The notes beneath the pieces are model-generated. The model ran no database searches. It worked only from the letters and a program-made list of their open reading frames with translations, and was not told the DNA's origin. The translations under genes were made by a program, and so were the position numbers. A stretch of 59,139 nt of DNA, the filler included, from Trichosphaerium sp. ATCC 40318 (Eukaryota > Protista > Tubulinea), in the NCBI GenBank assembly GCA_038496445.1. It is 3 parts of 3 records of this genome, joined end to end, with 100 filler letters (N's around TTAATTAATTAA, not from the genome) between each part and the next. Parts side by side here need not be neighbours in the genome. Positions count along the whole stretch, not along the records: positions 48,864 to 59,139 come from JALMLS010000151.1; 2 more parts are not named here. One strand, written 5' to 3'. Numbering within the stretch: position 1 is the first letter of the stretch; each line of letters starts with the position of its first letter. Below are positions 48,764-59,139 of the stretch, in pieces.

Positions 48764-48994
48764 NNNNNNNNNNNNNNNNNNNNNNNNNNNNNNNNNNNNN
48801 NNNNNNNTTAATTAATTAANNNNNNNNNNNNNNNNNNNNNNNNNNNNNNNNNNNNNNNNNNNNAATAAATAAAAATAAATGGCAGCTACGTTTACGAACA
48901 TGCGCCGCGCGTGTTGCGTCGAACGTGAAATTAAATGGGTAAAAAAAAAAAAAAAATGAACAAAACAAAAAAAAAAAAAAACAACCAACTTACT

Positions 48995-50098
48995 CAAAAC
49001 CAAAGATAACATCTCTGTGTTCTCCAATTAGAGTACCCACAATTTTTGTTTCAGTGTTGTGGTTTCCATGGGTACTCACAATCATCCAACCAGGACTTGT
49101 TGGAGCTAAAAAGAGTATTAGAAGTGGCACATCAAATAATTACAACTAACGAAAATACAAACACGTATTTTTCGTGTTAAAAATATGACCGCGAGCTCGC
49201 GGTCGGAAACGAACACATTAAATACGTGTTACGTTCAAAACAGCATGCTTGCAGTCAGTTATAAAAAGACTTTAAAAAAAAAAACGGTTTTTAAAAAAGT
49301 ACACACTTTTTATGTGTACAAAAACCAACCACAAGCTCAAGGTCAGGTACGAACACAATAAATAAGTGTTGTATACCATATACCAAGCAAGCAATCAGTT
49401 ATAAAGCAAGACTTTTAAAAAAAAAAACGGTTTTTAAAATAGTACACACTTTTTATGTGTACGAAAACCGACCGCGAGCTCGCGGTCATGTATGAACACG
49501 TTAAAAGCGTGTTTAAAACCGTACAGCGAGCTCACGGTCTGTAAAAAAAGCAAAACAACAAAAAAAATATTAAAAAAAAAGTACACAATTAAATTGTGTA
49601 CCAAAACCAACCGCCAACTAGCGCGACTAACAAACACGCGATATACGTGTTCGAATGCCGCAGCGAGCTCACTGTTGGAAATTAAAACAAAATAAAACAG
49701 TGTGAACCAAAACCAAACGAAAAAACAACACACACGCGTTCTGCGTGTTACGAAACCCTCGTTTGGGTTTGGTTCTACCATGCAAAAAAAACCGCATGGT
49801 AACGAAAAAATCGTACACATAAAAACCGTGTACAAAAACTGTCGGTTTTTTCCTAAATTTACTTGAAAAATTAGGATTTTTGAAAAAACCATTTAAAAGC
49901 AAAAAAACCCCCTTTATTAGTCTTTAAAAATTAAAATAAGACTAATAAAGGGGGTTTTAAAAAAAAAAGAGTAAAAAAGAGGTTAGTACCTAGTACTCTC
50001 TTCCTCCTGAGCCTGGGCTTACCATCAGCTTCTTTGGAGGGCTCATCCTCATCAGAAAACTCAATGTTTATGAGAGAGAGGTCTTCATCTGAGCTCAT
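48995..50098 (-). CDS. Orphan gene, first two exons (MSSDEDLSLINIEFSDEDE.. | PTSPGWMIVSTHG..)
   Basis: ATG 50098, donor near 49990, ~880-nt intron holding palindromes, open exon ~48995-49107, next donor GTAAGT. Confidence 0.55.
49187..49674. repeat. Intronic ~140-bp tandem units with the 18-bp palindrome GACCGCGAGCTCGCGGTC
   Basis: Perfect copies at 49187-49204 and 49470-49487, CpG-decayed copy at 49327-49344, partial copies near 49524 and 49661. Confidence 0.85.
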
Positions 50099-52484
50099 CC
50101 TTGATTTATGAAAAGTCAAAAAAGTAAAATGAGGCTTTTTTTCCCCCAATAATTGCGTTGAGAAATAGACAGGAAAATTTCGTGTTTCGAAATGTGAATC
50201 GGAAATTTCGCCTGTTTAAAAAAAGTAAGAAAAAAATGAGAATTTGACAGTTTGCAAGATTGTTGATGAGGTCCTGGGTTTGTAAAAAACCCTATCTTGC
50301 TGTAACCCTACAGGGAGATTGTATGTGCAAAAAACATAAAAAAAAGCCAAAAAAATCGAAAAAATTTTACAACAGGGTAGAGTAGTGTACAAAAAAATAC
50401 AGTTGGTACATACTCCTAAACCCTAACCCTAGTATCAGTGAATTAGGGTTTTGTACACTAGGGCTTAGGGGTTTAAACCCTAATGTTCGCTGATTCTCAT
50501 TCAGTGAACCAACTACCAAAAAAGGCAAGTCTTGCTCATTAAGCGAAAATATACACTAAATATTAAAAAACTTAGTACTTCTACAAAAACACCTCATAAC
50601 TATACACCAAGGCAATATAAATGACTCATACTTTATAGACAATAAATCAAGGCATATTGACATAAGATACATCAAGCGCTACATGTATGATGATATACAT
50701 GGCGAGTAATCAAAGCAACCCTAATGGATAAAACTATAAAATGGCAAAAAATATTTATTTGCTATCACTACTAAATACCATGATCATTTAGAACTAAATC
50801 ATTGTTATTTCTATGTAGCTACAATATAATACTTTATAAAAATATATTGTATGATAACATAGATGATATTAAAACTGTTATTTATATCATTTTTTAATAC
50901 AAATAGCATTTTTGCATGTTGACATTGAGAAAAAACCTTTATTTTAGCACTAAGATGATATATTCTTTTATAAAAAGTATGTTATATATCTAATAATCAA
51001 ATATAAAAACAATTATGTATGTAATTTTAACATAAGTGGCCTTGATAGGCCTATATACCACAAAAAAAAATAAAAAACCTATAATTCTCAATAAAACATC
51101 TGTGTTGCTGCATTAAAAACATCTACTGTATTCATGTTTCACAAGTCATCAACCACCATGCTTGAGATCATGTATGTGCAATAGATTGCAAATATATGAT
51201 ATAAGTCCAACAAAATAGATGAATTACATAAACACACACCAAAAAAATTATTGGCACTATAAAAAGCTCTATGCCAATATAATTTTACATCCATGATAAC
51301 ATTTTCAAATGGATAGAAAGTAGCCATATAACAAAGATATATGGCATCAAGAGGTACCATGGAGGCAAAGCTGTTTTTGGCAAAAATGGCATTTTTTTGG
51401 TTTTTTTACCATAAAGTATGATTGTAGGTAGCTTCATCAAAATCATCTATGTATATATAATAAATTACAAGATGATGCCATGATGTTTGTTAATAGGAAA
51501 ATGAAGAATCGCACACCATAGATAATATATGGGGGGCCTGGTGCATCAACGAACAATATCATCATTTTTGGCCAAAAAGGGCACGAACTCAAAATGCTTC
51601 TAAGCCTTCAAATCCAACCATCATTTTAGTTTTTAAGTAGGCTTATATAAAGTATATTAAGATGGCATAACAATTAAAGTAAATATTCATAGGGGGTATG
51701 GTGAACGACCACTAAAAAATGAAAAAATGGAGGAAATTTCTACATTTTCCTGATTTTGGATTGCATATATGCCACCCCACCAAATAAACTATATACCTCT
51801 TATTATTACTATGCCAAGTACTATATATCCTCAGTCGCCATCGATCCATCATGTAGTTGGCCGTGACCATTTTCGAAAATATATGCTATAAAAGGTAAAA
51901 CATATAAATTAATTAATAACTATTCATGATGGATAGGTATGACAAAATAGATGAATGCATTGGATTCCTTGAGCAAAATGGCATATATGTATATGTATAA
52001 GTCAACTATAGGTGATCATGTAACTACGGCCTCAAAGCAAAGATGTATCCAATTTTTTGCTAAAAAAATCCCATTGGAAAAATCAAAAAAAATCCAAAAA
52101 TCAAAGAATGGCTCACCAAATCGACATATACTGCTATAAAATCCTACAAACCACCAGCGATCGGGTAATTTATGCCAATGTATAAGGTACAAAAAACGAA
52201 ATTGGCTTAAGCAATATGATAAGGTATGCGATAATGCATGGTTCAAATTAAATCCCTAACCCTAACCCTGCCAACATTTGCCAATATTGTTGTTTGGGAT
52301 TTTTTTACAAATCCCAAGAAATTCCTTATTTTAATGGAATATAGCAGAAATCCCATCAAAAATCCTATTGAAAATTCAGATTGCTTAGGGATTTTTTCCA
52401 CAATTCCGTTAAAATCCTTAAAAAACACGGAATTTAACAGGATTCCAGAGGAAAATCCCGTTTTTAATTTACTACTGATGTGCT

Positions 52485-53959
52485 ATGCTTTTTGGTGGAC
52501 AGAGAAGACAAATAGTTGCCAACATCAAGATAACTGATCTCAAATTTGGACCCAACAACACATTGGAATCTACATTAGGCATTGAAAAAAGACCAAGGAA
52601 AAACAATGCCTCAGCACTTTCGGTACGTGCATTCGACACGCGTTTCGCATGTCGTTCGGGTTCCGAATTCAGACCGTCTTTGAACAATCATATTTCTTGT
52701 TGTTGAATATTTGCATTTTTTTCTCCTTTTTCTATTTTCACAGTCAAACAAACACTACAGGCTACATGTTCGACGCATGTGCGGACGCGGCCCGAGCTCG
52801 TACGATACGTCACAAGTACAACGCATGTGCGGACGCGACCCGAGCTCGGACCTCCCGTTTACACGCGTTGACCTGTGCGAGCGCACTTTCTCAAATGTCT
52901 TTTTATATAGTACTAACTTGTCTTTATCACACAGATGGACACCAACTTATTCACCTATGTTGCTCTTTGGTTCAACTCTTACAGAAAGCTATTGCTCATT
53001 CCTGAAGCTGAGCATCCTGTCATTCAATTTTGGGTCAACTTGAATGGTTCTGCAATGTCCAACAACTCAATAGGAAAAATGATCAAATATGTTGGCAAAG
53101 CCTTCAACCCCCACATCACCAACCTGACCTGCTCCACTGTCAGACACCTGACCCTAACTAAACTCTATGCTGGAGAATTTGCTGAAAGATCTAATTTGAA
53201 CTTTCCTCAACTTGGCAGAGACATAACAAGACTGTTGAACACTTCTTTGGCAACTGCAGAAAAGTACTACAATGACTATGACTCTCAAAAACAAGATGAG
53301 TAAGTTACTTAAGACAATCGAAACGCATGTTCGTTCGTTAGTTCGTGTGTCACGTTGGCTCCCCCTTCTCATCTTTTTTGTGTAGGAATACTTTGGCCAT
53401 GATCAACAGAGAAGTTTTAGGAGATCTTGCTGATACAATCCAACCAAGTTCAGTCCTTGTCAACCTTGCCCAAAAAGCTGTGTTGCCTTTGATAGAAAAA
53501 GATATTTTGTCTAGACCAATTAGAGTAACACCCAGCTTAAGGCAAAACATGAGTATAGAGGAAGCTTTTTTTTATGATCCTTGTGGCCAACATATTCACT
53601 TTGACAAAGGTATGGATCTGAAATTTGTGGTTTATTTGTTGTGTTTTCACTATTAACTCATTTGGCTCTTTATTTAAGATGAACACAAAATATCTAAAGT
53701 GTTGTCCATATTTTCGAATGGCGATGGCATCTTAACATGCAAAGTCATGTTGGCGAACGACGAAATCACTGTTTGGCCATTTGATAGAGTCAGCCAACAC
53801 AACATAGCTGCATTGAAAGCTTGCATCAAGGATTCCTTTACCAAATGGCAAACCAACTTTGCCAAAGTAAAAAATGAGCTTGAAAGCACAACAAAAAAGC
53901 TGGTAGAAGCAGAAACCAAGCTGTTGCTTCAAAAACAAGAAGAATTGAATGTCAATTGA
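52485..53959 (+). CDS. Tyrosine recombinase catalytic domain (spliced, apparently 5'-truncated) with C-terminal extension
   Basis: Exons 52485-52622, 52935-53299, 53386-53609, 53679-53959 join in frame. Motifs GGQRRQI (R), EKRPR (K), FWVNLNG, TCSTVRH (R-H), LLNTS..AEKYY (Y). Confidence 0.75.
52770..52890. repeat. Intronic CCGAGCTCG(G) array in YR intron 1
   Basis: Cores at 52792 and 52840 (48 bp apart). Confidence 0.85.
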
Positions 53960-54086
53960 AACAAAAAGCTACTATAATGAACAACAACAGTCAACAAACA
54001 ACTAAACAACTAATAAAAACCAAAACTTTTTTTTTTAATAATTATTTTTTATTTGCTAGCTACTAGGTATCATTTGCCATAAACTT

Positions 54087-57000
54087 TTATTCCTCCATTT
54101 GATCAAACAAATCTTGGCTGTTGTTGAAGTTCGCATTCGTTTGCGTGTCGTCGGCGGTCGGCGCTTGCTCGTCGTCTAGGTTCGCATCCGTTTGCATGTC
54201 GTCGGCGGTCGGCAGCTGGCTGTCTGGAACAACTATGTCATCTTGACTATCCTCTTCATCATCATTGTTGTTGTCATCTTTAGACAAGAGCTTTGCTTTT
54301 TTGGCCCTGGTGGTCACACCATCAACATTTGCAGGGCCATCTGCCTTTCTTTTGTGTTTCCTCACTACTAATGTACCTCTTCTTTTAGGCTGGGGAACAT
54401 CTGGAGCAATAATATTCTCTGACTGAGGTGGTTGAAGTTGACTAGAAGCTATAGGTGTTACCTCAGCAAGTGGTATAGCATCTGTTCCAGCATTTGTTGA
54501 AGTAATTTGGCCAACAGGTGCAACAGGTTCAACAACAACATTTTCCAAAGCACTTGCAATTGATGGAACACCCTGATTATCTTTTGCAGCCTCATCTTCA
54601 TCAAAAGATGGTGGTTCATCAAAGTCTTCTTCAGTAATGTTTGCAGCTGCAATAAAAAAGGTAAGTACAAATTAAATACAAAGAACAGAGGAAATGAAGG
54701 TGGACGAACAGGTCAACGCATGTAAAGAGGCGTTCCGAGCTCGGAACCAAACTAACAGGTAAAGTGCGTGTAAAGTCGCGTTCCGAGCTCGGAAGGTGAA
54801 CGAACAGGTCAAGCGCGTGTAAAGTCGCGTTCCGAGCTCGGAAGGTGAACGAATAGGTAAAGTGCGTGTGAAATCGCGTTCCGAGCTCGGAACGTAAGAG
54901 AACAATCGATACGTATGTTTAACAACAGCCGTCGAAAAAACAACAGGTATCCTATTATTCTCCATCACCCACAACCTTCACCCACAAACAAAAAAACCTA
55001 TACTCTAACTTATTAACCTACCTTTAAAAAGCATTTTTGCCATCACATTATCTGCTGGAACCACCAATGTAATGTGAAGGTCTTGTTTCACTTTTTTCAA
55101 TGTAACATCCTCTGATGCTCCTGCCCAAACATTCAATCTCTTTCTGGTCACTTTTGTAAACTCTTTCAAAGCAACTAAATGTTCTTTGTATTTCCTCTCC
55201 CTTGTTCTAGGAGTGTCATCCATGAATAAACCTCCATAATTAGACTCAGAGCCAATTGAAGCTGTTTTTGTTGGAGTAGTTGGGGCATTTTGCTCTGTAG
55301 ATGAGGCATCTGGCTTTCCTCCATCTTGGCTTGGATCTTTTGGGCCTGTAGGTATTGTGGTTGGTCCTGTCAAAACAGTACCAGTAGTAAGGTTTGAAGA
55401 AACATTGCTTGAAGTAAGAGCTGGTTCTTTTTCACTCATTTGAGCACCACCAACAGGGGAAGTAGGTTCAATGGGTGTTAAAGGTGCTAAAAAGGGGAAA
55501 AAAGTTAGTTGTGCAAGCTGGTTCGCCGAAAATATACAAACGTCCGTTTGTATGTACCTGGTGGCTTATTGATTGGCTGGACAGTTTGTTGGTTGGTTGA
55601 TTTGTTGGTGTCAGTGGTATTTGAAACAACTGAAGCACCACCAACATTAGAGGAAGCCTGAATGGTTGCCAAAGGTGCTAGAATAAACAAAGTTAGTGGG
55701 ACAACTAGATACAATCGGGCGGCTAACAGCCATGCGCGTGTACCCGGCGGTCCGACGGAGGTTTTATTGGCACCACCAACTGTCAATGTAGCAATCTTAA
55801 TGTTACTTCTTTTGCTTTTCCTTCTTCTTGGAGATTTTGTTGTTGGCTTTGCTTTGGTTAAATCTTCTACATCTGTTTCTCCTGTTTTTTTGTTTTTGTG
55901 GCTTCTGGCATTTTTAGTATTGCCACTTTTAACCTCTTTGAAATGGCTATAACTTTCAATCATCTTTTGCTCCAATGCATCCCCTGTCGAAAACGAGTCA
56001 TTACAAACGATCGCGTGTGCGCGAACGGCGCTACTTAGTCGAATGAAATAAAAACCATCACTTACTGTTAGCTTTAACCAAGTTAGAGTCTGCACATATC
56101 ATAGCCTCCATTGCAGTGTGTGAAAACTGCAATTTGTCCAAGGAGCCCTTGATATTAAAATCATAGTACACTGCATCACTAGTCTTCTTTGGTGTGAACA
56201 ATAGCTCTGGATCATATACCAACAATTGCTTTAATATGCCATCAGACAACTCTGCTGCATATTCAGACAAAGACCATTCATCTTCAATATCAACAGGGGT
56301 TTCATCATCTATCATGTGGGTCCACCCAAGATTTTTCAGCTCTGTTAAAGCTTGTACTGTAAACTTTCTGCAAAGGTTATACCTGACAAAAAAATAGTTT
56401 TGTGATGTTGTAGGGTATAAACCATGTGTTATTGCTTTGCAAAACTATTCAAAAAAATAAGAGTTGGTGTAACTTTACCATGTGATACTTACTGATATTC
56501 TTGCAGCCAGAGGTAGGTCATTCCAAGCACCATGACTAAAATGCCTGATAGTATATCCTGGTATGGTCTTACTTTGCTACAAAAACCATGAGCAACAGCT
56601 TTTTTTTGACAAACAAGGAACTAAAAACCCACTTTTATAAAACAGATTTTCATAAATGTAATGCATGTAAAATGACGTTCCGAGCTCGGAGCGTACGCGA
56701 ACATACGTCATGCGTGTAGAAAGACGGTCCGAGCTCGGAGCGCCCGCGAACATGCGCAATGTGTGTCGAACGACGATCCGAGCTCGGAACGCCCGCGAAC
56801 ATGCGCAATGTGTGTCGAACGACGATCCGAGCTCGGAACGCCCGCGTACATGCGCAATGCGTGTCGAACGACGATTCGAGCTCGGAACGTTCGCGTACAT
56901 ACATTATGCGTGTATAAAAGGGCATAATAAATAAAATACACTTACCCTTTTATCCACCACAGAAGTCATTTGTGTCCTCACTATTGCAGGCACAGGCATG

Positions 57001-59139
57001 AAAAACAATCCAGATTTGATGATCTCTGCTGTTTTGCTTTCACTCAGACCACCAAATTTACCTTTTAAACTGTCTTGTGTCTAATAATCAAAACAATTAG
57101 TTATGTCATTAGTAAAAAAAATAATGTTCAGGGGCTAATAAATGGACATACCAAATGTATTAATTTTGTTTTATATTTAATAGACCTTGCAATACTCCAC
57201 TTCCGTTTGTTTATCCTGTTGTCCTTTACCTTGGGATCTGCATGATAGTCATATTTCAGGTTAGCAAGTGTCATGAATGTCCCCAAGGCAGCTATGCACT
57301 TATCCACCAATGTATGCTTTGTGACTTTGGTTTGGTCTTCATTCAGCTTGGAGCAATATGTTGATATGGCATTTAAACCCTTAAAAGGATTAAACCATGT
57401 CAACTGCTTTCCCAATTTAAAATTGCTGACAGAGTTGGTCCTGGCATTTGTTGGACTTGGTTTGCTAAAACAAAAATGTCAGGCAAGCGCAACGTCTGTG
57501 CGACTGCGTTCGATCGTGACGTACCAGAGAGCTGTCAACAAGCAATGAGCTCCATCAACAACACCAAACCCAGGTGTTTTTACCCCATTATAGATCACAG
57601 GGTTATATGTCAATATCAAAGGTTTGAGATGAGTATCTTTTAGTTCCATCTTGTCCAAGATATTTCTAGTGTTTACTGATCTGACATCCATAAAACACAC
57701 AATATGAGACATTTCATCAGCTTTTGGTTCAATATCCCCAGGAAGTAGTAGGTCTTCTACTTTCATGCCATCTTTAGCTGCTGTATGATTTAAAGCTTCT
57801 AGATCCTTTTTATCAATCAAACACAGATTCATTGACTCATGTGCTTTAGTGCAACTAATATAGAAGTAAGTACAATATCAAAGAGTAAACGAAAATATAC
57901 ACATGCGGTCGGCATGTTCGTTCGGACGTACGACATGAATTCATCAAAATCAGCAGCTTGCTGAAAGGATAGTGAGTTTCTGGCATACACCATCAACAGT
58001 GCAGCATAGTATTCAGAATCTGTCAGATTTAATGCTGTGGCCTCATACAATTGCTCTGTCCAAATAACAATCTGCCAATATAATATTCTTTCCACACAAG
58101 TATTATACCAAGTCTGTTTGTCCATTTCTCCATCATAGGCCATAGGCTCCCACCACTCAGAAGGAGCTTCATTAAAAGTATTTATCACTTTGTTTAAGAA
58201 TGTTGCCAAAGAGTCTTTGGTATCAAAGTGAGGAAATCTTATCTAAAAAAAACAAACAATGTCAGCATCAACAATTCTGATAAATAAGTAGACTAAAAAG
58301 GCATGTGTGCTAACCTTCCGAGCTCGGAACGCTACCGGACAAGAAAACGCGTGTAAGTATACGTTCCGAGCTCGGGACGTGCGTTTACATACATAGACCT
58401 GTTTGGATTTCGTTCCTAGCTCGAAACGCTATCATAAAAGAAAAATGCATGTTAACATTGGTCCCGAGCTCGGACCGCTATCACACAATAAAAACGCGTG
58501 TAAGGTATAGGTTCCGAGACTGGGACCCTACGTGACAAGTGTGTGTTTATGAAAGGGAAAATACATACCTTGAACAAATTTGATAGCTGCTCTGGATCAT
58601 TCAAATCACATGCTGCAGCCAATGTATTTGTAAAACTGAGTGAAAAACTATTGCTCAAAATATTTTCCAATTGCTCTAAAGGCATACTTCTGACATGTAC
58701 TTGGGTAATATCTTTGTCTGGTAAAATTGCTTCTCTAAATACATGTAAATAAAACATTGAAAGGAACAAAAGTATATGAGAATCTAACAAAGCAACATAC
58801 AAAAACCCAATGGCAATACCATCCTCTTTGCCCAACAGAGTGCCAATAGCTTTCTTCCAATTCAAGCGTGAATTTATATTTGCCAATATAAACCAGCCAA
58901 TACCTTTGGGCTCTGGAACTAGTGTAAAAGTTAGTCATAGTCAACAATAAACAAGTTAAAATAGAAATATCAACTAAATATATAAAACAATGTATGTAAA
59001 CGTACGTTCCGCGCTCGGAACGTATCCAAACAGGTCAACGTATGTAAACGTACGTTCCGAGCTCGGAACGTAACCAAACAGGTCAACGTATGTAAACGTA
59101 CGTTCCGAGCTCGGAACGTATCCAAACAAGTCAACGTAT
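54087..59139 (-). CDS. Large orphan multi-exon gene (start beyond window) with a weak ParB-like motif and low-complexity S/T/P/D-rich C-terminus
   Basis: Open exons join across GT-AG introns (e.g. FMS|CTKAHESMNLCL). KPLIL..GFGVVDGAHCLLTAL at ~57530-57625. Stop 54087-54089, convergent with the YR gene. Not all junctions verified. Confidence 0.6.
54710..54895. repeat. Intronic palindrome array, 4 units
   Basis: CGTTCCGAGCTCGGAA cores at 54735, 54783, 54832, 54881. Confidence 0.95.
56660..56915. repeat. Intronic palindrome array, 5 units of 49 bp
   Basis: Cores at 56680, 56729, 56778, 56827, 56876. Confidence 0.95.
58310..58530. repeat. Intronic palindrome array, 5 units with heterogeneous spacers
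   Basis: Cores at 58318, 58366, 58415, 58464, 58514. Confidence 0.9.
58990..59139. repeat. Intronic palindrome array, at least 3 units of 48 bp (truncated by window end)
   Basis: TACGTTCCGAGCTCGGAACGTA cores at 59009, 59057, 59105. Confidence 0.95.

Follow-up and report, generated by a model that had tools for sequence, protein, structure and literature searches.

The DNA examined here (the window) is a stretch of 59,139 nucleotides from the protist Trichosphaerium sp. ATCC 40318 (assembly GCA_038496445.1), and all coordinates below count along this whole stretch. The genome part analysed was positions 48864-59139 (~10 kb, record JALMLS010000151.1), hereafter called the piece. It holds three spliced genes: a tyrosine recombinase (YR) gene on the plus strand, a long gene on the minus strand that converges with it (gene B), and a divergent gene on the minus strand (gene C). 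An initial annotation of the sequence had proposed that these genes form one new large mobile element whose cis-acting palindromic sites are stored in introns. The introns and junctions reported here are predictions from frame logic and splice signals; in all three genes the junctions are GT-AG and the open frame is kept. Splice signals, branch points, and TTAGGG-type runs are the eukaryotic signs in the piece.

The YR gene comprises four exons, and its stop at 53959 lies 128 bp from that of gene B. Its recognisable parts are as follows.

52479-52622, plus strand: first recognisable YR exon, with the box I arginine in GGQRRQ at ~52503 and the lysine at ~52587; the frame breaks upstream near 52479.
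52623-52934, plus strand: YR intron, with two perfect 48-bp palindromic units (52778-52863) and one degenerate unit (~52648-52686).
52935-53299, plus strand: catalytic exon, with the second arginine in TVRH at ~53142 and a tyrosine pair at 53265-53270; it contains zero CpG.
53386-53609, plus strand: exon 3, a linker without homologue, with an open frame and GT-AG junctions.
53679-53959, plus strand: last exon to the stop, at the position of the relatives' chromodomain; the similarity is not significant.

Database searches, in which single exons and not spliced models served as queries, bore out the YR assignment of the initial annotation. When the catalytic exon 52935-53299 was used with phmmer, two proteins were matched among 1.84 billion representatives (P0001, E 3.8e-4; P0002, E 7.5e-4), and further searches added P0003 and P0004. 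These four chromodomain-bearing proteins from environmental contigs were the only relatives found. A word-indexed search with the P0003 region, of a kind that detects proteins of similar length only, returned just P0001 and P0004, and a search with the alignment added nothing. The weak matches to P0001 and P0002 are credible because the upstream exon of the window independently matches the relatives' GGQRRQ motif: with tblastn, exon 52479-52622 matched the relatives' loci L003 and L004 (E 2e-4) and also L001 and L005. Here, L004 is a shorter copy of L003 and was not counted as an independent locus. Among the relatives, P0004 matches XerD (E 4.7e-5), XerC (E 5e-4), and PF00589 (E 0.004). The catalytic residues R, K, R, and Y are present in the YR, and an alignment of four sequences shows no variation at the second arginine or the tyrosine pair; both histidine positions are replaced in the window and in all relatives. 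The YR exon of the window alone gave no direct family match in the Pfam, PHROGs, and NCBIfam scans of single exons, and its link to the family is transitive. Judged by these similarities, the gene is a real but distant member of the tyrosine recombinase superfamily.

The chromodomain model PF00385 is matched directly by P0001-P0003 (E 3e-8 to 2e-5), and the chromodomain of P0004 is on record. We also considered a chromodomain in the last YR exon of the window, which resembles one by eye but scores no better than shuffles. Neither the window exons nor P0001-P0004 matched DUF3435 at E up to 1-10, or GCR1_C or DUF3504 in Pfam, and no reverse transcriptase (RT) or RNase H frame was found in the 10-kb piece or in the frames of L001-L005. 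A scan of IMG/VR with the YR query yielded no relative, and the one match of the YR query in prokaryotic genomes was a chance match in an unrelated protein. The structure models (pLDDT 46 and 49) were too poor to use. Upstream of 52479 there was no coding-like frame or homology, and the N-terminal core-binding domain was not found; this YR copy appears from its sequence to lack the 5'/N-terminal part. The open frame at 52238-52480 was tried as the YR N-terminus and rejected, with a codon score of ~0 and no significant similarity. The 200 bp at 52270-52478, which separate the YR from a telomere-type run described below, are rich in AAATCC/GGATT words, and an open frame across them has the relatives' LGIFS and LLMC, without significance.

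Gene B runs on the minus strand over 54087-58918 in 12 exons of ~1050 codons, with its 5' end past the right edge.

58820-58918, 58569-58734, 57932-58242, 57525-57854, 57152-57464, 56946-57080, minus strand: the six upstream exons of gene B within the piece.
56479-56576, 56066-56382, 55744-55983, 55558-55677, 55022-55486, 54087-54646, minus strand: the six downstream exons of gene B.

Its GT-AG introns have branch-like motifs, and the frame is open over the ~1050 codons. A leave-one-out codon score, which compares the modelled frame with the other sense frames, favoured the modelled frame in 13 of the 14 exons of gene B and the YR; the frame of the most upstream exon of gene B, 58820-58918, is ambiguous. 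The C-terminal 40% of the product is low-complexity. Gene B exons matched nothing in Pfam, PHROGs, or NCBIfam, two of them matched nothing in IMG/VR, and a word-indexed protein search with 57832-58242, which again detects proteins of similar length only, returned nothing. A structure model of a single exon was too poor (pLDDT 49), with a best Z of 4.5 to unrelated folds. A 51-bp tandem duplication at 54113-54213 in the last exon contains 16 CpG and is the only CpG-rich coding stretch.

Exact CGAGCTCG cores occur 18 times within 48864-59139. Under a first-order model built on 48864-59139 alone, 0.013 were expected, and the maximum in 300 replicates was 1. All 18 are inside predicted introns, as the initial annotation had noted for the larger introns of the three genes. 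Sites were found in all five complete introns of at least 312 bp and in none of the ten introns of 60-96 bp, a comparison that is partly circular, as the arrays themselves lengthen introns. The cores fall into six clusters (49192-49664, 52793-52841, 54736-54882, 56681-56877, 58319-58465, and 59010 to the edge), five of which have a period of 48 or 49 bp. The array that the initial annotation placed in the YR gene has only two perfect units plus one degenerate unit. The other four regular arrays, for which no strand is given, lie in introns of the gene B region.

54721-54904: array of 4 dyad sites, period 48/49/49, in intron 54647-55021.
56666-56899: array of 5 dyad sites, period 49, in intron 56577-56945.
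58304-58537: array of 4 dyad sites plus 1 degenerate site, period 48/49, in intron 58243-58568.
58995-59139: array of at least 3 dyad sites, period 48, in an intron cut by the right edge.

In the five arrays, the consensus unit consists of the two-part dyad TGT-N12-CGAGCTCG-N12-ACA and a linker of 10-11 bp after it. Close to the centre of the dyad, self-complementarity reaches 0.8-1.0; it drops to 0.06-0.17 at 13-16 bp and rises again to 0.83-0.89 at 17-19 bp. The full dyad was matched by 15 units at ≤1 mismatch and by none in shuffles. Outside the central 16 bp, unit identity is 0.70 within an array and 0.47 between arrays; because the site geometry is conserved at the same time, the arrays appear to expand and homogenise locally while the dyad and the period are held. 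One dyad form is common to the introns of the YR gene and gene B, and inverted near-copies connect different introns: 58352-58406 and 59074-59128 are 87% identical over 55 nt (pair I1), 52840-52879 in the YR intron and 54705-54744 in a gene B intron are 85% identical over 40 nt (pair I6), and there is a further pair, I8. The arrays had been described as phased. A fixed period of 48-49 bp is indeed present, but 48.5 bp corresponds by arithmetic to ~4.6 helical turns, and the sites do not share one helical face.

The gap in self-complementarity at 13-16 bp fits a DNA site read by protein rather than a hairpin, and we infer from the sequence that the dyad and its spacing are under selection as a symmetric protein-binding site. 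A structured-RNA reading of the unit was rejected: the folding z-scores are expected from tandem palindromes anyway, and the unpaired gap favours a DNA site. A scan of Rfam gave no match at the gathering level. Elsewhere, the site patterns had no match in IMG/VR, and the dyad was not found in the prokaryotic genomes scanned. A metagenome scan for three cores at 48-49 bp returned only three GC-rich bacterial coding repeats, which are unrelated (L006, L007, and L008). These have CCGAGCTCGG at 48-bp steps (L006 5306-5411, L007 2240-2345, and L008 2018-2123), and the one in L006 is a 24-bp repeat within an amidotransferase-like frame.

The dyads could also be read as crossover sites of the YR, with two arms and an 8-bp symmetric spacer, between which inter-array recombination would invert or shuffle exon blocks and spread units. 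Sites such as lox, FRT, and dif show the general layout of YR crossover sites. In size and layout, a 38-bp dyad built around an invariant 8-bp centre matches such a site, and units have moved between introns in both orientations (I1, I6). However, YR sites usually have asymmetric spacers and are most conserved in their arms, whereas these dyads are conserved in the centre and not in the mid-arms. Moreover, twenty live sites in genes would delete exons, yet the gene B frame is collinear and open, and no recombination joints were seen in one DNA run of very low cover. We regard this explanation as very unlikely.

Gene C reads on the minus strand from 50098 as a divergent orphan; two exons, in phase, are seen before the left edge cuts it.

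48994-49105, minus strand: gene C exon 2, in phase with exon 1; TAG acceptor, GTAAGT donor; CpG-free; codon score 0.22, coding-like.
49106-49989, minus strand: gene C intron of 884 bp with five variant sites (cores at 49192, 49332, 49475, 49527, and 49664).
49990-50098, minus strand: first seen exon of gene C, which starts with ATG and encodes an acidic and then a basic stretch; weak codon score of 0.07.

The sites of gene C are a variant, GACCG-CGAGCTCG-CGGTC, with a different inner arm. They are spaced at 137-143 bp, with one spacing of 52 bp, and three of the five show decay of the CpG-to-CpA type. The proposal that all three genes share one palindromic site thus held for the YR gene and gene B, which have the same type, but not fully for gene C, in which the variant is perfect in only 2 of 5 sites and differs in spacing. 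Near the donor of the long intron, 49903-49957 contains a perfect 21-bp inverted repeat with a 13-base loop, and directly upstream of the gene, 50288-50482 contains six AACCCTA (telobox-like) words in both orientations.

A second feature of the locus, not mentioned in the initial annotation, is its telomere-type runs.

52254-52269, plus strand: CCCTAACCCTAACCCT telomere-type run, 210 bp before the first YR motif; a candidate target site or element end.
50414-50430, plus strand: imperfect telomere-like run, a direct repeat of 52253-52269 (88% over 17 nt).
50431-52252, no strand given: AT-rich non-coding stretch of 1.8 kb, 30% GC, CpG observed/expected (o/e) 0.44, flanked by the two telomere-like runs.

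The last of these is possibly, from its sequence, a nested non-autonomous insertion. In four of the five independent loci (the window, L002, L003, and L005), CCCTAACCCTAACCCT adjoins the YR on the YR strand. It stands just before the YR exon in L002 (86-107) and after the YR gene in L003 (2944-2959) and L005 (2253-2268), the latter ending two bases later. The fifth, L001, has no CCCTAACCCTAACCCT and stops 60 bp past its gene. Repeat arrays occur in L003 as well: a 15-bp tandem array (1-490, apparently intronic, with an acceptor near 505) lies upstream of its YR exon and an inverted form downstream (2270-2940), the two having 44 shared 12-mers inverted and 0 direct. The YR-chromodomain unit of L003 looks, on its sequence, like a small complete YR element that ends at the telomere run. 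In L005, G/C-run hairpins and GCGAGCGA repeats are found between the YR stop and the telomere run (1920-2050 and 2150-2250). On the simplest reading of these loci, the YR family would target or end in telomere repeats and use repeat arrays as cis sites.

CpG content differs between the exons and introns of the piece. CpG o/e is 0.16-0.18 in exons, with TpG/CpA at 1.46-1.48, and 1.79 in array introns; only one of 45 arginine codons is CGN. The small introns without arrays have CpG clusters, with o/e averaging 1.5. CpG-rich islands in such introns (53319-53353, 55524-55545, 55716-55756, 55988-56040, 57488-57520, 57890-57931, and 48889-48924) have words such as CGCRTGT and GTTCG in common with the array flanks. 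The overall contrast fits methylation and deamination with protected islands. Each array-bearing intron might be an inserted Introner or a MITE-like element that made the intron, as the array introns have a common internal unit and are CpG-rich inside CpG-poor exons. Against this stand the four complete array introns, which have no common terminal sequence beyond GT and AG, the lack of duplicated exon flanks, and the differing unit numbers and flanks; we therefore consider this origin highly improbable.

Another explanation assigns the arrays to the host, as an intronic minisatellite or a chromatin-factor site present genome-wide. Genes B and C would then be lineage-specific host genes, the YR a decayed remnant or a domesticated gene whose intron gained the repeat by conversion, and the CpG loss in exons the result of host gene-body methylation. 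The local homogenisation of the arrays (0.70 within and 0.47 between) is as in minisatellites, the gene C variant differs, and array-free small introns have CpG clusters with similar short words. Additionally, the YR has no 5' part, its relatives have no array, and there is no multi-copy signal. Conversely, a neutral repeat is not expected to hold a two-part dyad and a 48-49 bp period amid divergence, and the 10 kb contain no conserved host gene, all three genes being orphans or of mobile type. We judge this explanation unlikely, though still a serious alternative in an analysis that covered this piece of the genome only.

Taken with moderate confidence, our preferred interpretation is that the piece comes from a large YR DNA transposon, similar to Cryptons and Starships, that targets telomere repeats and has protein-binding sites in its introns. 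The piece would be an internal fragment of this intron-rich element, and its YR would belong to an uncharacterised eukaryotic clade. By analogy with known elements (PMC3212892, PMC12220804), the element might be excised as a circle and integrate via a short core into a telomere-repeat target, (CCCTAA)n; this copy is probably not autonomous, because its YR appears 5'-damaged. The 48-49 bp arrays would be clusters of sites to which a two-fold symmetric, element-encoded protein (the gene B product or the YR) binds, and such a dimer, recruited at several points, could serve end synapsis or retention of the excised circle. The arrays may be kept in introns because the genes, lying end to end, leave no other place where sites are tolerated. 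The element would have been CpG-methylated and deaminated, and its sites may have escaped via binding or selection. What was observed comprises the arrays, the geometry of their sites, their place in introns as judged by frame logic, the homology of the YR, the telomere run next to the YR in 4 of 5 independent loci, and the difference in CpG; mobility, the circle intermediate, target use, the identity of the binder, the role of the arrays, and methylation are what we infer from this arrangement.

Several results weigh against this interpretation. The initial claim that the block is one mobile unit was not substantiated, as the 10-kb piece and the sequences compared showed neither an element end nor an empty site, nor a second full copy. 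One public DNA run (X1) covers small parts of the piece at 95-99% identity, and its share of 0.06 and depth of 3-6 give no indication of a high copy number. The CGAGCTCG array is absent from all loci of the relatives, and no relative locus is long enough to reveal a gene B homologue. Genes B and C received no homologue or fold assignment in any search. With both catalytic histidines replaced in the sequence, the activity of the YR is not certain. The telomere association was noticed after the fact, with the host telomere content not known, and the run in L002 could merely supply an intron branch point. Finally, the CpG contrast may be a host trait, because the array-free small introns are also CpG-rich (o/e 1.5). 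The X1 contigs, 95-99% identical to the block, indicate that another strain or copy of it exists. On 56568-57021 and 58313-58958, these low-depth contigs carry a few substitutions, two of which alter amino acids in exon 56946-57080.

The piece might also come from an endogenous large DNA virus, with the arrays as origins or enhancers like the baculovirus homologous regions (hr) and the YR as a telomere-repeat integrase, as in endogenous nimaviruses. Baculovirus hrs are built in this way, from dispersed tandem arrays of imperfect palindromes (PMC4758234). Telomere repeats are where nimavirus YRs insert, and introns occur in some nimavirus genes (PMC10871703). Polinton-like viruses (PLVs) use YRs (PMC12220804), and among the Atlas look-alikes of the YR exon are clusters assigned to viruses. 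However, no capsid, packaging, polymerase, or other viral hallmark was found within the visible 10 kb, and IMG/VR holds no relative of the YR, of two gene B exons, or of the site. In addition, introns are as dense as in nuclear genes, with 15 complete ones in 10 kb, whereas endogenised viral genes are mostly intron-poor (PMC11244446). We consider a viral origin improbable.

We find it doubtful that the piece represents a new class of element that integrates in (TTAGGG)n and has a partition-like system, in which a ParB-derived gene B protein would bind centromere-like intronic dyad arrays and shield them from CpG methylation. By eye, the end of exon 57525-57854, where VVDGAH follows a hydrophobic strand, resembles a ParB motif. 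This identity of gene B is not supported: no match was obtained in Pfam, NCBIfam, PDB, plasmids, or phages, and the arginine of the ParB motif is replaced. The partition array sopC of the F plasmid consists of 43-bp repeats, each with a palindrome. Plasmid partition arrays resemble those of the window in their fixed-period tandem dyads, but the latter are dispersed in introns, and the ParB similarity is without tool support.

Beyond the ascomycete fungi, where they are well documented, little is known of large cargo-carrying YR elements. If our preferred interpretation is true, a spliced, divergent YR clade with a preference for telomere repeats would widen the range of such mobility and be a source of a sequence-specific eukaryotic integrase. 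A limited literature search brought up no transposon with selected, fixed-period arrays of protein-binding sites in its introns. Should the arrays serve segregation or synapsis, they would bear on the upkeep and re-integration of the excised circles of big YR elements; if they are instead host-wide, the genome has an unusual intron and methylation architecture that is worth describing.

Compared with known systems, the arrays resemble baculovirus hrs in architecture only, as dispersed tandem imperfect palindrome arrays of varying copy number (PMC4758234); they differ in lying in spliceosomal introns, with a 48-49 bp period, a two-part dyad, and no viral context. Endogenous nimaviruses (Majanivirus and Pemonivirus) share YR insertion in telomere repeats and some intron-containing genes (PMC10871703), whereas the piece has no viral core gene, a six-base and not the arthropod five-base repeat, and a far higher intron density. 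The giant YR repeats associated with Plavaka in Amoebidium are a parallel from another protist, in which large repeats that carry patchily distributed YR genes are methylated (PMC11244446); they differ in being intron-poor tandem clusters with a Plavaka transposase, which was not detected in the piece. TATE, DIRS, and Ngaro elements also have a YR integrase, and TATE is telomere-associated (PMC6390901); in contrast to these, neither the piece nor the short relative loci contain RT/RNase H, and an RNA intermediate is unlikely for the window element because of its many introns.

The likeness to Cryptons in the broad sense lies in a YR without RT, within the 10 kb seen. Crypton-type YR genes often have introns (PMC13465315), Crypton terminal direct repeats are 4-6 bp (PMC3212892), and some CryptonV families insert in microsatellites (PMC8869645). 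The telomere run that adjoins the YR in 4 of 5 loci is consistent with CryptonV, which was likened by description only. The GCR1_C domain of CryptonF and the DUF3504 domain of CryptonA had no Pfam match. No published account of such arrays in spliceosomal introns of a YR element was found in a limited search of open-access literature, and intronic dyad arrays did not turn up for Starships in the portions of the published accounts consulted. Starships also differ in DUF3435, which neither the window exon nor the relatives matched. A Starship has its captain at the 5' end and short direct repeats at both ends; here the right end would lie past the edge of the piece, and 52254-52269 is a candidate for the left one. 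Starships and Enterprise elements resemble the piece in that its YR stands at one side and reads towards large cargo-like spliced genes (PMC8092012, PMC11162782). The Enterprise captain carries a chromodomain (PMC8092012), and P0001-P0004 combine a YR with a C-terminal chromodomain, as the captain Kirc does (PMC8092012, PMC11162782). A new large element is plausible, but its novelty must be qualified: large YR-mobilised, intron-containing, repeat-targeting elements are already known (Starship/Enterprise, CryptonV, and endogenous nimaviruses), and beside these the piece is probably part of a large YR DNA transposon of an undescribed sub-type.

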